A stretch of DNA of 64,000 bases, taken from sequence record MK773491.1. One strand, 5' to 3'. The notes beneath the pieces are model-generated. The model saw only the letters and a program-made list of their open reading frames with translations. It had not been told where the DNA came from and did not search any database. This document shows positions 3,507 to 55,989 of the stretch, in pieces; positions within the stretch are counted from its first letter, which is position 1, and each line of letters opens with the position of its first letter. A program made the position numbers and the translations under genes.

Positions 3507-4181
3507 TTATGATACGGTTACAGCAGCAATAGCTTGTTTTGCACCATCAGTAGTTACTACAGTGATATTAGCAGTTCCGGTAGAGATGAATTTCACTAAT
3601 CCGGTACTACTTATAGTAGCAACTTCAACATTATCCGATTCCCATGATACTGATTTATCAGTTGCATTTTCTGGTAATATAGTAGCAACTAATTGTACAT
3701 CAGGGTCACCGACTGCCCCAGAAACTGTACTTGGTTCAACTGAAACACTTTCAACATTCACAACGGTTGGTTCAGGTGGAACTGCTTCTGTGGTTTGTGC
3801 ATTATAATCCACTATATCTACTTCTAAACCATTTGACAAAATGATTTTATGAGTGAAGAATTTGTATGCATAACCAAGTACATCACCAGATTCAAGATCA
3901 TATACTTTCACGACATATTGATTCTTTCCAATAGATTGTTTAATTTCTTCCGCAGTAGCTGATAATGGTAGATCTTTGAAATTCTTATCTTTACTAACCA
4001 TTTTCATGAAAGAATAGATTTTATCAGTTCCTTCATTAACTAGATCAAAAATACGGGTAGAACGTTCATTAATGATGAATAATTTATCATCAATTGGGTT
4101 TGCTTCATTATCTACTGCTGCAAATACATTAATGCCACCTACATTAAATGGCAATTCTCCAAATTTAGCGATAGGCTTCAT
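3507..4181 (-). CDS. Ig-like (Big_2) domain protein, probable virion decoration/adhesion protein
   Basis: C-terminal VESVSVEP..VQLVATILPENATDKSVSWESDN..VATISSTGLV..GTANITV.T.DG Big_2 pattern; start set to the ATG after AGGAG. Confidence 0.8.
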   Translation of the reverse strand: MKPIAKFGELPFNVGGINVFAAVDNEANPIDDKLFIINERSTRIFDLVNEGTDKIYSFMKMVSKDKNFKDLPLSATAEEIKQSIGKNQYVVKVYDLESGDVLGYAYKFFTHKIILSNGLEVDIVDYNAQTTEAVPPEPTVVNVESVSVEPSTVSGAVGDPDVQLVATILPENATDKSVSWESDNVEVATISSTGLVKFISTGTANITVVTTDGAKQAIAAVTVS

Positions 4182-4230
4182 TGGCTTTCTCCTATTATTA
4201 AAGTACTTTATAATATTTACCAAAAAAGTC

Positions 4231-4259
4231 TTGACATATGGAACAAAACGTCATACAAT
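4231..4259 (+). promoter_or_regulatory. sigma70-type promoter
   Basis: TTGACA-17 nt-TACAAT. Confidence 0.65.
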
Positions 4260-4297
4260 GTACCTCATATCACGATAACATCCCCTTGAAAAATCTT

Positions 4298-4325
4298 GGG
4301 ACAAACTAAAAAAATGTGATATAAT
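4298..4325 (+). promoter_or_regulatory. GGGACAAA-class promoter (copy 1)
   Basis: GGGACA-16 nt-TATAAT with TGTG extended -10, upstream of natV. Confidence 0.7.
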
Positions 4326-4381
4326 AAAGATGTAGCCGATGATGTAGTCGGTGTTAAAATAGTAACTAAGGAGTACTTAGA

Positions 4382-8905: not shown

Positions 8906-9304
8906 ATGCGTATACATTATTGGTTAAGATGGGCTTATGAAAGAACGGAAATGGAAAAATCATTCCAGACACGTGCACAAGCAATTCATAAGTTAGTACA
9001 TACCAATAAGGAAATTCATGATATTTTAATGGATTCAAAAACGCATACAGTATCGTTTGATGTACTTGCTGGTGTTAGTCAGACGGCATCATTTGAAAGA
9101 TATCTAACTATAATAGCTACGAGAAATTTCAAATATGAAATATCATCTTCTGAGTTTTTCGAAGTTATGAAGTTAAACAATAGAGGTACTTGGATTTTTT
9201 ATTCCTTCAATGTACCCTGTGAAAACAGTAAACAAGAGTGCTTGCACATTCTATCCAGTGATGGAGTTTACGTGTACCGGGGTGCTCTAACCTTTGTCCA
9301 GTAA
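8906..9304 (+). CDS. hypothetical protein
   Basis: ORF track 8867..9304; first non-overlapping ATG used. Confidence 0.55.
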   Translation: MRIHYWLRWAYERTEMEKSFQTRAQAIHKLVHTNKEIHDILMDSKTHTVSFDVLAGVSQTASFERYLTIIATRNFKYEISSSEFFEVMKLNNRGTWIFYSFNVPCENSKQECLHILSSDGVYVYRGALTFVQ

Positions 9305-9307
9305 ATA
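9301..9307 (+). promoter_or_regulatory. possible late promoter (TAAATA) before acb1
   Basis: GTAAATA about 30 nt before the start codon. Confidence 0.4.
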
Positions 9308-9337
9308 CATATAGTTAACCAATTAAAGGAACACATT

Positions 9338-9784
9338 ATGTCAGGAAAAGGTTTTGTGGCATTGAAGTTAGATTCGGTGCAAGGAAAAGAAATTCAAAAA
9401 ATATTTAAAACTGCTGGAATAAAATGCTTGACACCAGCAAAATTCCATGTTACCTTAGTATACGATGAGTCAGATCCAGAGATCGATCTTCCTTCCAACA
9501 CTAAGGTATACAATGCGGAGATCGTCGGTGTCGAGCGATTGGGTAAGAAAGGATCGAAGTATGAAGCAATCGCTTTAATACTTCGTTCGCCAGAAATAGA
9601 GAAAAGACATAAAGAGTTGAAGAAGGCTGGTTTCAACCACAAACATCCAAGTTTCAAATGTCACATGAGTGTAGTATACCAACCCGGTGAAACCGATGAA
9701 GACATTATAGATCTGATCTATAAACTTGGTGTACTTCCGAAAACTCTAAAATTTGGTAAGGAATATATGGGTACTACTAAGTGA
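9338..9784 (+). CDS. acb1: Acb1 / T4 gp57B-like 2H phosphoesterase (anti-CBASS nuclease family)
   Basis: HVTLVY and HMSVVY 2H motifs; LILRSPEIEKRH..L...G..H..P spacing matches T4 57B. Confidence 0.75.
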   Translation: MSGKGFVALKLDSVQGKEIQKIFKTAGIKCLTPAKFHVTLVYDESDPEIDLPSNTKVYNAEIVGVERLGKKGSKYEAIALILRSPEIEKRHKELKKAGFNHKHPSFKCHMSVVYQPGETDEDIIDLIYKLGVLPKTLKFGKEYMGTTK

Positions 9785-13923: not shown

Positions 13924-13928
13924 AAGTT

Positions 13929-13957
13929 GGGACAAACACTCAACAATGTGATATAAT
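13929..13957 (+). promoter_or_regulatory. GGGACAAA-class promoter (copy 2)
   Basis: GGGACA-17 nt-TATAAT with TGTG. Confidence 0.7.
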
Positions 13958-37342: not shown

Positions 37343-37981
37343 ATGCTAGGTTATACCGTTAAGAAAGTACTACCACTTGAAGTTCTGGAATCATTAGAAA
37401 CTCATGGTTCTATGAAATCTGCAACTGTTGATGGGATTACATTTAATTATTTCCCAGAAAAGATTGCAACATTTCTTAAGAATAATAAATGTATTTGCTG
37501 TGGAATACAAGCACATGAAGTACGTTTAGAAGAAGGTAAAGGTACTCATGCCATCTATGGTAATGTTCACCTTAACGTGTATGCTAAACATATCACGACT
37601 TGGGGAGAGTATTGGGATCTAATGACAATAGATCATGCCATTCTCAAATCAAGAAACGGCCCTGATATTCAAGAAAACTTTAATACTATGTGTCGGAAGT
37701 GTAATAAACTTCGCGGTTCGCGTTATCCCAATCTTCAAGACTTTCTATCTCGCTATGCAGAGCACGGAGAGTCTTTGATTACAAGTCGTGCTACATCTCT
37801 TCATCATTACCGTTTACGTAAACGTGAACAGGGTACAGAAGAATATAAAGCTATCGTGAAGCATCGTAATGAGATGCGTGAAGCAAAGGTCGCTGAGTAT
37901 CTTAACGGTCTTTGTGCATCTCATGTAGGAGCTTACAATCGCCACAACAAAGCCTTGAAAAAAGCATTGACAGTAGGTTGA
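37343..37981 (+). CDS. HNH endonuclease-like protein
   Basis: CxxC then MTIDH....S.NG....N..TMCRKCN..RG. Confidence 0.7.
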   Translation: MLGYTVKKVLPLEVLESLETHGSMKSATVDGITFNYFPEKIATFLKNNKCICCGIQAHEVRLEEGKGTHAIYGNVHLNVYAKHITTWGEYWDLMTIDHAILKSRNGPDIQENFNTMCRKCNKLRGSRYPNLQDFLSRYAEHGESLITSRATSLHHYRLRKREQGTEEYKAIVKHRNEMREAKVAEYLNGLCASHVGAYNRHNKALKKALTVG

Positions 37982-38037: not shown

Positions 38038-38391
38038 ATGAAGACAAAACGTTTCCCACAAGATATAATGAAACAGATGGCATACGGTTGCAGTACTGTA
38101 ACAATGTTTGGTGAATATAACGACAAGATGGGTTGCTTTGATGATGATGTAGAATTAGAAGTATTACATAATGAGGAATGCAATACTACTCGTTGGAATA
38201 GCGTTCATGACCTTGTGTTTGTTGACAAACAGACAGGAGAAGCGTATCATACACAGTATGAAAAAGGTCTTACCGAATCACAGATGCTAGAACCATTTGA
38301 CTACGATAAAGATGGTGTTGATTGCGATATTGTTGATGTTTGGGAAGAAGAAGTTACATACAAAGTTATTAGGTGGAAAGATTCTAAATGA
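38038..38391 (+). CDS. hypothetical protein
   Basis: track 37912..38391; ATG after GGAG. Confidence 0.7.
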   Translation: MKTKRFPQDIMKQMAYGCSTVTMFGEYNDKMGCFDDDVELEVLHNEECNTTRWNSVHDLVFVDKQTGEAYHTQYEKGLTESQMLEPFDYDKDGVDCDIVDVWEEEVTYKVIRWKDSK

Positions 38392-38777
38392 TTAAAGATA
38401 TTGATTTTTCAGGACTTGAAATCGTTAGTGCAGTCAAGAACATTACTGACATGTATGATGAAAAAGGGGTGATTTGTACTATTACTTTTTTAAAAGAGGA
38501 AGATAGTATTTCGCATCTAACGGGAATTGAAGAATTAGTAGCTAAATTAGATTTAGAAGAAAATAAGAAGTATATTAAACTTTCTTATTCTTATACTATG
38601 GTTGAAAAAGAGATCGATACCGACCGCCCGGTGAAGGTGATTTTTACAGGAATAAATAAACCGTACAAAAAAATCTCCCGGTGCACTGAGGACAGTACTG
38701 AACTGATGCAGGACATTAAATTCATTGATGAGGTCTTTGAACGTTCACCTAATGAACTCAAACGCACATATCTATAA
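38388..38777 (+). CDS. hypothetical protein
   Basis: 129 aa ORF, ATGA coupling. Confidence 0.65.
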   Translation: MIKDIDFSGLEIVSAVKNITDMYDEKGVICTITFLKEEDSISHLTGIEELVAKLDLEENKKYIKLSYSYTMVEKEIDTDRPVKVIFTGINKPYKKISRCTEDSTELMQDIKFIDEVFERSPNELKRTYL

Positions 38778-38781
38778 TCTT

Positions 38782-38810
38782 GGGACAAACAGGTTTTTTT
38801 GTGATATAAT
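38782..38810 (+). promoter_or_regulatory. GGGACAAA-class promoter (copy 4) driving the candidate ncRNA
   Basis: GGGACA-17 nt-TATAAT with TGTG. Confidence 0.75.
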
Positions 38811-38816
38811 ATATGA

Positions 38817-39304
38817 TGAGGGATTACCCTCAGTCATACCAATCCTGAATGGCATGTGAAAGCATGAAAAATAAAAACCTGATCCTATCGAAAAGTAGAT
38901 GGCAGATGAGTAGTTCATTCAGTACGATGTGCAAAAGAAACCCGTCAGAAATAAAGCGTAAGTGTAGTCGATTCCAACGAGACGTAAATCACACGCATCA
39001 CGGCAATGCGGCACAATAAAGGCGTTAAGAAAACATAATCGCCCTAGATAGACATATGAGGCATACTCACCTAGTTGAAAGGGAGTCTCTTTACGGAGAG
39101 ACAGCAGTATTTGTTGCTGAATTAGCAAGTACTGTAAGCGTGTGAGGAACACGACCGTTGTATGCAGACTGTAGTAGCTGGAAACAGGACAACCCGCCAG
39201 CGATTACTTTTATTTCAAATGGATTGATCCGTCTGAAATTTGAGTGGAATCTACAAATTCAGATTGGTATGACTACCAGTGTCAGGTTTATCCTGATTTT
39301 TTTT
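38817..39304 (+). ncRNA. candidate large, highly structured non-coding RNA (about 490 nt), family unassigned
   Basis: promoter-to-terminator unit with no credible ORF; 13-bp end-closing helix 38832-38844/39262-39274; 10 or more internal helices; GNRA/UNCG loops; A-rich linkers. Confidence 0.75.
39282..39304 (+). terminator. intrinsic terminator ending the candidate ncRNA
   Basis: TCAGG-TTTAT-CCTGA followed by 8 T. Confidence 0.65.
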
Positions 39305-39378
39305 CGGCCCTCCCTTGTGGGGGGATGGAATTGGATCACAAACCGTGTCAATAATAAAAAGTACAAACAATATAATTT

Positions 39379-39428
39379 GAATTATTATTTCTATAAGCGA
39401 AGTATGAGCGTAAGAGAAATAATAATTC
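39379..39428. repeat. perfect 14-bp inverted repeat
   Basis: GAATTATTATTTCT (39379-39392) / AGAAATAATAATTC (39415-39428), 22-nt spacer. Confidence 0.8.
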
Positions 39429-39470
39429 TTAGACAATCGAAGATTGGCTAATCAAAAACAAGGATATGAC

Positions 39471-40058
39471 ATGAATTCACATGAATTAGCTAAAAAGCTA
39501 TTAGAGTTGCCAGAACACGAAGTGTTTATTGAAGTACAAACACCATCATCTAATGGTGTTGGTTTTGAATACAAAACAATAAAAATTTCTGAAAAGAATC
39601 AAATCACTCCTTCTGGTATTTTCCTTAAGCCTGATGTTTTCTTTAACCATACTAATGTAAAATCTCCTAACAGTGAACCAGTTATTGGTTCATATGCATT
39701 ATACTTCAAAGATAAAACGGTAGTGATTAATCGTTATGATGAAAGTCGAATTAGTACTGCAACAGTTAAATTGTTGAGTACTGGAGAAAGTCGTGTTCAC
39801 GAATATGGTACTTATAATATGACTATTCATGACAATTTCCAACATTTCAATCGTGGATTTGAAACTGATATTGTATTAGTAACTAATAAAGAAACATTTG
39901 GGGAAAAAGAACAAAAGCTATATCCAAATGCAGAGATTAGACATTTAGAAGATGTTGACTATGTTCGTGTATTAGTATCGTATGATAAAGATACATGGAC
40001 ACCAACTTATAAGAGAATGACTTATGCAGAAGCAATCGAATTCGGTAAAAGTCTATGA
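39471..40058 (+). CDS. hypothetical protein (paralog of 41724..42260)
   Basis: ELAKKLLELP, TPSGIF, SP..EPVIGS, YAEAIEF. Confidence 0.7.
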   Translation: MNSHELAKKLLELPEHEVFIEVQTPSSNGVGFEYKTIKISEKNQITPSGIFLKPDVFFNHTNVKSPNSEPVIGSYALYFKDKTVVINRYDESRISTATVKLLSTGESRVHEYGTYNMTIHDNFQHFNRGFETDIVLVTNKETFGEKEQKLYPNAEIRHLEDVDYVRVLVSYDKDTWTPTYKRMTYAEAIEFGKSL

Positions 40059-48989: not shown

Positions 48990-49017
48990 AAAAATACGCA
49001 GTTTGTTTCAAAAACTT

Positions 49018-49046
49018 GGGACAAACTGCTTTTTATGTGCTATAAT
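49018..49046 (+). promoter_or_regulatory. GGGACAAA-class promoter (copy 5)
   Basis: GGGACA-17 nt-TATAAT with TGTG. Confidence 0.75.
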
Positions 49047-55956: not shown

Positions 55957-55960
55957 ATCT

Positions 55961-55989
55961 GGGACAAAAACATGAAAATGTGATATACT
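55961..55989 (+). promoter_or_regulatory. GGGACAAA-class promoter (copy 6)
   Basis: GGGACA-17 nt-TATACT with TGTG. Confidence 0.7.

Follow-up and report, generated by a model that had tools for sequence, protein, structure and literature searches.

What is contained in 693 nucleotides (nt) of phage DNA that lack any open reading frame (ORF) of at least 70 amino acids? The question is raised by positions 38778–39470 of a stretch of 64,000 nt from sequence record MK773491.1 (Salmonella phage 7t3). We call this stretch the window and count positions from its first letter. The interval lies between genes at 38388–38777 and 39471–40058. It is the longest such gap on the + strand of the window, although not the only one, as an earlier note made from the letters alone had it: a gap of 574 nt at 3808–4381 is the second longest and ends at a TGGGACAAAC promoter. 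The same note proposed that the interval encodes a large structured non-coding RNA of about 490 nt. The absence of a conserved ORF, a strong covariation and the presence of a promoter at every copy bear out the RNA, whereas its length has to be revised: the conserved unit has about 540 nt and extends to about 39352. We conclude that the interval contains a member of a new family of highly structured non-coding RNA genes.

A new family of structured RNAs

The interval 38778–39470 is 100% identical in the Salmonella phages 7t3, SE_PL and Munch and in Klebsiella phage fENko-Kae01. Phages of the 7t3/Munch type are Rak2-like jumbo myoviruses with genomes of about 350 kb. In Munch the equivalent interval, between CPT_Munch_186 and _187, is unannotated. 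The syntenic gap is kept in Asteriusvirus (EJP2, Turkey5), Mimasvirus (GAP32, CBB, XbC2) and Eneladusvirus (fHe-Yen9-03, BF, pEa_SNUABM_49), and also in Hallingskeid, Kaldavass and XaC1.

The + strand has a minimum free energy of -144.5 kcal/mol (z = -5.8), which none of 100 dinucleotide shuffles could equal; for the - strand z = -4.8, also against dinucleotide shuffles. In the syntenic intervals of related jumbo phages the helices are conserved and show compensatory changes. We aligned 38 homologues with MAFFT, and RNAalifold predicted 53 pairs in them, 36 with compensatory changes. When ten helices (49 pairs) are held fixed, 96.1% of the 1812 pair cells are paired, versus 37–46% in controls with the 3' partners slid by 1–3 columns. 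Both sides vary in 38 of the 49 pairs, and the covariation score is 0.625 versus about 0.1, a value reached by none of 500 shuffles. The compensatory changes in the ten helices thus indicate selection on an RNA or on single-strand pairing. The longest ORFs in the 38 homologues have 25–85 amino acids and are inconsistent in position, frame and strand, so that no ORF is conserved.

The earlier note had left open whether the RNA is distantly related to a known class or belongs to a new one; only the latter stands. A cmscan search of the window with Rfam 15 gave zero matches at the gathering score; ROOL, GOLLD, OLE, HEARO and raiA are thus absent at this score, and the same holds for group I and group II introns, RNase P, tmRNA, 6S and SRP. 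With E values up to 10, the segment 38600–39500 only gave four weak and unrelated matches (Spy1186876, nqrA-II, S15 leader, whalefall-1). ARAGORN found zero tRNA or tmRNA genes in the window. Since there is no match in Rfam 15 we consider that this is a new class; the family is undescribed both in Rfam 15 and in the searchable literature. A group I intron was discarded as a candidate, given the own promoter, the complete genes on either side and the lack of an Rfam match. The window has no second copy of the RNA: blastn matched only promoter-like 30-mers and nhmmer gave a single hit.

A promoter had been proposed at the start of the RNA, and a consensus scan locates it as TGGGACAAAC-N10-TGTGATATAAT. 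It belongs to a class with five occurrences on the + strand of the window:

4297–4325, 13928–13957, 38781–38810, 49017–49046 and 55960–55989, + strand: promoters of the class TGGGACAAAC-N9-11-TGTG(A/C)TATA(A/C)T
38781–38810, + strand: promoter of the RNA, with -35-like TGGGACA and extended -10 TGTGATATAAT; predicted transcription start at about 38817

Only one of the five (38781–38810) drives the RNA, as the same class also serves other genes which have no RNA. A TGAAAC/GGGACA element and a TGnTATAAT box are found upstream of every phage and island copy, so that each RNA gene has its own putative sigma-70-like extended -10 promoter. In CBB and GAP32 a promoter class 'TGAAACG -35' has been described, concentrated upstream of DNA-synthesis genes (PMC5259590). 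By its sequence, the class of the window corresponds to it as a local form.

Secondary structure of the window copy

The helices and domains supported by the alignment, together with a variable 5' hairpin, are the following:

38817–38832, + strand: 5' hairpin TGAGGG/CCCTCA, variable and missing from several paralogue groups
38845–38922, + strand: domain 1, helix H1 (CTGAATGG 38845–52 / TCATTCAG 38915–22) around two hairpins, with the conserved junction AGATGAGTAG
38853–38866, + strand: hairpin H1a, CATGT-GAAA-GCATG, with covariation
38884–38902, + strand: hairpin H1b, CCTATC-GAAAAGTA-GATGG, with covariation
38928–39015, + strand: domain 2, helices H2 (TGTGC 38928–32 / GCACA 39011–15) and H2a (CCGT 38942–45 / ACGG 39000–03)
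39021–39043, + strand: hairpin H3, GGCG/CGCC, with both-side changes in 5 of 5 pairs
39044–39160, + strand: central junction with GATAG (39047–51), hairpin TGAG/CTCA (39057–69), AAGGGAG (39079–85), three hairpins and GACCGTTG (39153–60)
39170–39255, + strand: domain 5, in which helix H5 (TGTAG/CTACA) encloses H5a (GCTGG/CCAGC) and H5b, with covariation

Several of the helices that had been drawn by eye on the single sequence are conserved with compensatory changes: H1 and the two GAAA-type hairpins which it encloses, H2, H3 and the three hairpins of the central junction (39085–39102, 39105–34 and 39139–53). In domain 1 both sides change in 7 of 8 pairs of H1, 4 of 4 of H1a and 5 of 5 of H1b. 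The pairs of domain 2 are 100% paired, with both-side changes in 4 of 5 pairs of H2; a near-invariant internal loop, AAAAGAAAC / CAATGCG, separates H2 from H2a, and a variable hairpin insert occupies 38949–38999.

Other proposals survive in part. From the structure CTAG..TGAG-GCATA-CTCA..CTAG at 39044–74 we keep the hairpin TGAG/CTCA, but its outer CTAG/CTAG pairing is not conserved. Similarly, from GTAGT-A-GCTGG/CCAGC-G-ATTAC at 39171–39207 there remains GCTGG/CCAGC (39177–39201), while GTAGT/ATTAC has to be given up: TGTAG 39170–74 covaries with CTACA 39251–55 instead. The rest are not conserved. The 13-bp helix that was to join both ends of the RNA is only 45% paired across homologues, being specific to the 7t3/Hallingskeid lineage. 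CGCAT/ATGCG is unsupported, as the homologues favour H2a. The pseudoknot CAACG 38975–79 / CGTTG 39156–60 has its 5' arm inside the variable insert of domain 2, which most homologues lack. TGAA-TTTG/CAAA-TTCA at 39234–61 is not conserved; TGAAAT pairs locally with ATTTCA within the GATCCGTC module.

In the central junction GATAG, AAGGGAG and GACCGTTG are invariant in the alignment. When 15 representatives are folded separately, the stretch between AAGGGAG and GACCGTTG takes in all of them the form of one and the same three-hairpin junction, though the stems differ in sequence; the 3' half is organized alike in these folds. In domain 5 the loop of H5a holds the invariant GAAAC..CAACCCGC, and H5b holds the GATCCGTC module (39226–33). 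The position of this module changes among paralogues: the window type has it in H5b, other paralogues have it in the hairpin that comes first after AAGGGAG, and the 121Q type has it at both places. Swaps of this sort are typically seen in RNAs whose three-dimensional fold is defined. The invariant unpaired blocks are AGATGAG, AAACCCGT, CGGCAAT, GATAG, AAGGGA, GACCGTTG, CAACCCGC, GGGGGATG and ACAAA. The data speak neither for nor against two candidate long-range pairings, one between GCAAUG in the loop of domain 2 and the CGUUGU within GACCGUUG, the other between ACG and CGU of the tail; the bases that they involve are all nearly invariant.

The 3' module and its direct repeats

The end of the RNA had been placed at a hairpin followed by eight T. 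The hairpin and the T run are indeed present, but they are not the end of the unit, since conservation continues for about 55 nt. The features of this region are:

39281–39304, + strand: terminator-like hairpin GTCAGG-TTTAT-CCTGAT with T8 after it, inside the conserved unit
39308–39330, + strand: hairpin P7, CCCTCCC-TTGT-GGGGGG, with an invariant G run (alignment columns G510–G517) and GGATGnAA
39273–39286, + strand: direct repeat R1, CTACCAGTGTCAGG, whose GTCAGG doubles as the 5' arm of the terminator hairpin
39339–39352, + strand: direct repeat R2, CAAACCGTGTCAAT, the end of the conserved unit
39353–39450, + strand: AT-rich spacer with a 14-bp inverted repeat, TTCTTAGAC and a hairpin; it precedes the gene at 39471–40058

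Beyond T8 the conserved elements are the P7 stem-loop (39308–24), GGATGGAA and CAAACCGTGTCA, up to about 39352. A hairpin with a T run between CGTCAG and the 3' module is found in four of the eight phage groups (7, 3, 2 and 1; the groups are described in the next section) as well as in the E. coli island copy, whereas groups 4, 5, 6 and 8 and the Serratia islands lack it. Given this patchy presence and the conservation beyond it, T8 would be an optional terminator inside the functional unit, which does not end there. The pairing of P7 is kept by one-sided C/U changes, and its invariant run of 5–6 G (39319–24) lies about 30 nt short of the conserved end.

R1 and R2 are at a distance of 65–110 bp. 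In 41 to 44 sequences, including paralogues and islands, they covary in identity and not in complementarity. At positions 39276 and 39343 the sequences divide evenly, 22 with C,C and 22 with T,T, and the mutual information is 1.0. The tree requires at least three separate switches between both states, since groups 2 and 6 do not agree with their sister groups. At 39280 and 39346, 41 sequences share C,C and 3 share T,T, and in one island GTCA has become GACA in both repeats. R1 and R2 differ between the paralogues of a single genome, so that the constraint acts within each copy. A search for a partner in cis matched only the G run and GAUG beside P7; no covarying complementary partner was found for the repeats. 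A third motif similar to R1/R2, AAACCCGTCAG, is present in domain 2 (38938–48).

The 60 nt after R2 have a mean GC content of 26% and a maximum of 33% in the 38 copies, compared with 35% for 60-nt segments throughout the window and 40% for the RNA itself. In the window the spacer contains a perfect 14-bp inverted repeat, GAATTATTATTTCT...AGAAATAATAATTC (39380–39428), then the conserved TTCTTAGAC, and a 5-bp hairpin CAATC-GAA-GATTG (39426–39446). A motif TTCTTGAC-hairpin-GGCA recurs downstream of most paralogues with compensatory changes; in some copies its hairpin loop contains the Shine-Dalgarno sequence GGAG of the next gene.

Five copies in each phage genome

With blastn we detect 3–5 places related to the RNA in each phage genome; a 121Q paralogue used as query matches 293 places in 72 records. 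IMG/VR was scanned for the 3' motif, and a subsequent profile search recovered 45 full-length copies, of which 39 are unique. These form eight sequence groups, with 55–63% identity to the window copy across groups. The window contains one copy; Munch has another at 182.0 kb and five blastn places in total.

The distribution of the copies is very regular. In GAP32 they are found at 35/99/178/262/341 kb, in CBB at 32/94/175/258/336 kb and in three complete metagenomic genomes at 41/108/188/270/333, 54/109/166/246/329 and 21/106/187/251/311 kb. All five genomes thus have five copies on one strand, with gaps of 53–85 kb and at syntenic sites. For five random points on a circle the probability of such an even spread is 0.0004–0.005, although the genomes are syntenic and the spacing therefore counts as a single evolutionary observation. 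By sequence comparison the RNA is one of five paralogous genes per genome in Rak2-like jumbo phages. Most phage copies are co-directional with the neighbouring genes; some copies are flanked by opposite-strand genes, as is the case in 121Q for the copy between endonuclease VII and the baseplate hub, which only has opposite-strand neighbours. No flanking protein is common to, or has paralogues at, the different RNA loci of one genome, and none is shared by phages and islands.

Copies in bacterial defence islands

The family is also present in bacteria. A strict core pattern finds the RNA in four bacterial genomes, including the complete chromosome of Serratia fonticola GTA-SR07, and a profile search shows that all four are full length. 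Among 5,426 complete E. coli genomes blastn detects a copy in two; that of strain LR-29-1 is full length. The hosts are Serratia, Silvania and E. coli, and metagenomes add more islands. The loci that we have examined are:

L086, 3690–4211: Serratia fonticola island
L094, 13956–14555: E. coli LR-29-1 island
L084/L091, L085/L093, L092, L087, L083, L097 and L164: further islands

There is a single RNA in each case, at the edge of an integrated island of about 10 kb, in a segment of 30–40% GC within a chromosome of 50–60% GC. It adjoins a large serine recombinase or a tyrosine integrase, often with a convergent CI-like S24 repressor next to it; in several islands the CI-like repressor gene, or ParB genes, lie in convergent orientation to the RNA. 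In most of the examined islands a small serine resolvase is found at a distance of several kb, in some cases with a DUF2188 protein next to it. The islands are integrated at different places, adjacent to rof/tilS, thiM, arsC, a miaB-like gene or ffs. The cargo includes DarT with an ADP-ribosyl glycohydrolase and a UvrD-like helicase (DarTG), Hachiman HamA with its helicase plus AbiGi, and a 1780-amino-acid AEP-reverse transcriptase with a second reverse transcriptase; HNH_2, Hcp-DUF4225 and DuOB-DUF488-DUF4326 are also found. No replication gene was recognized among the island proteins scanned.

The island copies retain promoter, core, P7 and tail. In the tree they occupy deep clades of their own and are not nested within one phage group. 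The RNA family is thus common to Rak2-like jumbo phages and to small integrative defence islands of Enterobacterales, which suggests an unrecognized link between these phages and mobile defence elements.

Possible functions

Our preference, which is tentative, is for an RNA that acts in cis in a replication origin, a transcription-coupled pre-primer or R-loop RNA analogous to RNA II of ColE1 or to oriF and oriG of T4. The element would act on its own encoding DNA as a start of replication coupled to transcription. Favoured by the folding of the nascent RNA, a persistent RNA-DNA hybrid would form at the 3' module (R1, the G6 run, R2 and the AT-rich stretch), and the hybrid would supply or position a primer and open the duplex for the T4-like replisome of the phage. 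The five evenly spaced and co-oriented copies would be origins of the 350-kb genome, and an island with its single copy could be amplified without having to encode a replication protein. Through the identity of R1 and R2 the RNA of the upstream repeat could pair with the template strand at the downstream one; such a pairing in cis would require this identity. A role in cis on DNA would account for four features: copies that are regularly spaced, paralogues that have diverged, a conserved module beyond the terminator and repeats that keep their identity. If the element is an origin, these would be the first replication origins known to us for this phage group, and the islands would have a route to ride on phage infection and amplify their defence genes.

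In ColE1 a folded RNA of about 550 nt is made from its own promoter, and the persistent hybrid needs a stretch of rG paired with a stretch of dC in the template. The shared features are these: in the window and in all 38 homologues a sigma-70-type promoter (38781–38810 in the window) lies about 550 nt before the conserved end (about 39352), a folded RNA of similar size has a G run near its conserved 3' end, AT-rich DNA follows, the upstream/downstream identity would permit pairing of the RNA with template DNA, and in the islands no replication gene has been recognized. It differs from RNA II by having far more invariant unpaired core nucleotides and by its presence in a lytic phage with a T4-like replisome. 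In the case of T4, origin transcripts are not known to need an elaborate conserved fold, whereas here about 540 nt of conserved structure lie between the promoter and the AT-rich DNA. The origins oriF (uvsY) and oriG (gene 34) of T4 combine a promoter of the middle mode with an unwinding element that lies downstream (PMC4412123). The similarity is that of a T4-related phage, in which several origins are expected, with a promoter followed by easily melted DNA; the study of CBB cited above also ties the present promoter class to DNA-synthesis genes.

Several points weigh against an origin. No transcript, R-loop or replication data were found for Rak2-like phages, nor a transcriptome in the literature. 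So many unpaired positions are invariant, and modules swap places so readily, that the RNA resembles a ribozyme, a ribonucleoprotein or an assembly made only of RNA more than it does a simple primer. GC skew has no inflection at 39 kb, which is uninformative for unidirectional or T4-like replication. A blastn search with an island copy found no homologue in 72,556 plasmids, in contrast with ColE1 RNA II. Nor is there a conserved antisense sigma-70-like promoter, its best aligned position being occupied in 8 of 38 sequences, so that a control similar to RNA I is not expected. The co-orientation of the copies is largely explained by the neighbouring genes, which are nearly all on the same strand, and AT-rich DNA after the element is also typical of ordinary intergenic DNA. 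Where the T-run hairpin is present, termination at it would remove the conserved 3' module. A more complete version appears rather unlikely as a whole: a family of R-loop origins with an elaborate fold, present in five copies in jumbo phages and copied by satellite-like islands for amplification driven by phage or host, with R1 and R2 acting in the hand-over from RNA to template DNA.

Next to this cis-acting origin we consider an ornate RNA that acts in trans, similar to ROOL, GOLLD, OLE and raiA; with a defined three-dimensional structure, it would serve during infection as a scaffold of ribonucleoproteins, an RNA-only multimer or a ribozyme. Five paralogues could then provide dosage or sub-functions, and the island copies would be decoys or helpers of the island. 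This, the main alternative, is somewhat doubtful, but much of the structure speaks for it: at least ten covarying helices, invariant unpaired blocks (GACCGTTG, CAACCCGC, GATAG, AAGGGAG, CGGCAAT, AGATGAG) and a GATCCGTC module that swaps between two peripheral hairpins, like the peripheral domains of RNase P and group I introns. Each copy also has its own promoter, with a terminator-like T-run hairpin in four of the eight phage groups, and there is no conserved neighbouring gene. ROOL and GOLLD, too, are found in phages, and they assemble from RNA alone (PMC12286853). The genomic arrangement is more difficult to accommodate. A diffusible RNA does not need an even spacing of 53–85 kb at conserved sites, the paralogues have diverged to 55–63% identity instead of being kept alike, the most conserved module is found beyond the T-run hairpin in half of the phage groups, and RNA-RNA pairing does not explain the covariation in identity of R1 and R2.

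With ROOL and GOLLD the RNA shares its large size (about 540 nt), many covarying helices, conserved loops, its presence in mobile elements and an apparently independent transcription. It differs by the absence of any sequence or structure match in Rfam 15 and by its hosts, jumbo phages of Enterobacterales instead of Firmicutes, rumen and lake sources. Further differences are the five diverged and evenly spaced paralogues in each genome, the copies in integrative defence islands, the lack of tRNA genes in the window and the conserved module past an internal terminator. It is a new class of a known kind, that of large structured RNAs carried by mobile elements, and its genomic pattern is unusual. 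Large, intricately folded RNAs of phages and bacteria without a known job are rare and have repeatedly been a source of new biochemistry. In this case the five diverged copies at regular intervals are an uncommon pattern, the identity covariation of R1 and R2 points to a mechanism that can be tested, and laboratory strains can be used, since lytic phages of E. coli and Salmonella that are available in culture (121Q, PBECO4, Munch, 7t3) carry the family.

An improbable alternative is a transcriptional element that acts in cis at the head of long transcription units, either as a very large leader that modifies RNA polymerase for processive antitermination, as put of HK022 and EAR of Bacillus, or as a switch of its own terminator. 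The phage copies lie just downstream of a promoter and upstream of same-strand genes, the T-run hairpin is present in four of eight groups, and in the window its 5' arm overlaps R1, whose GTCA may alternatively pair with an upstream TGAC; the spacing could mirror transcription domains. As in put and EAR, a promoter-proximal structured RNA is followed by a terminator and would act in cis. However, put/EAR-type antitermination elements have 70–120 nt, the present RNA being five to eight times larger, and some copies have no co-directional downstream gene. A riboswitch, a T-box or a put-like leader would have such a gene in every copy; it is missing in the 121Q copy that has only opposite-strand neighbours and in several island copies, so that a plain 5' leader is unlikely. 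An island RNA that converges on a repressor or ParB gene has no downstream gene to control. Furthermore, in groups 1–3 the terminator does not overlap R1, and the promoter class drives other genes of the window which have no RNA.

Even less probable is an element that works as DNA, with R1 and R2 as crossover sites of site-specific recombination, or as a dispersed repeat or mobile module, the RNA structure being secondary. Direct repeats that covary in identity behave like the core sites of recombination, the islands contain serine recombinases and resolvases, and one GenBank record (ON568341, UE-S1) labels one of the paralogues as repeat_region. These facts are outweighed by the compensatory changes in ten helices, by a distance of merely 65–110 bp between R1 and R2, and by the presence of syntenic sites across genera, which indicates that the copies are not actively mobile. 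A packaging site was also considered and rejected: the terminal repeats of these genomes, about 20 kb long, are fixed, and in CBB all five copies are outside the 22-kb repeat.

Small protein-coding genes or a chance fold can practically be dismissed in spite of the short coding sequences (CDSs) annotated in the 7t3, PHA46, Hallingskeid and Yen9-03/04 records, as ORFs are not conserved in position, frame or strand, the conserved blocks contain one-nucleotide indels and the helices covary.

Other observations

The CDSs annotated over the RNA are labelled as hypothetical proteins, of about 32–38 amino acids and up, in records MK773491 (7t3), PP191103, PQ464590 (Hallingskeid) and LT960551/2 (fHe-Yen9-03/04). 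They are probably mis-annotations, as their frame and position are not conserved, and the RNA family corrects them.

Three metagenome contigs with about 43% GC (L117 at 9215–9474, L114 and L122) match only the 3' half of the RNA profile, and one of these matches adjoins T4-like portal and baseplate genes. They may represent a more distant branch of the family in another group of phages.

Large non-coding RNAs may be a recurrent feature of jumbo phages related to PA5oct and Rak2. PA5oct, a Pseudomonas jumbo phage and distant relative, expresses long non-coding RNAs (lncRNAs), defined by RNA-seq, of 450 and 619 nt, the first with up to 5% of the phage reads (PMC7318152). As homologues of the present family, however, lncRNAs 002 and 004 (L081 952–1402 and L082 817–1435) were rejected: nhmmer at maximum sensitivity was negative.

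A free-standing HNH endonuclease gene, according to the Munch annotation, is found at 37343–37981, upstream of the RNA by about 0.8 kb. Where other phages have two genes ahead of the RNA, XaC1 has an HNH gene in their stead.

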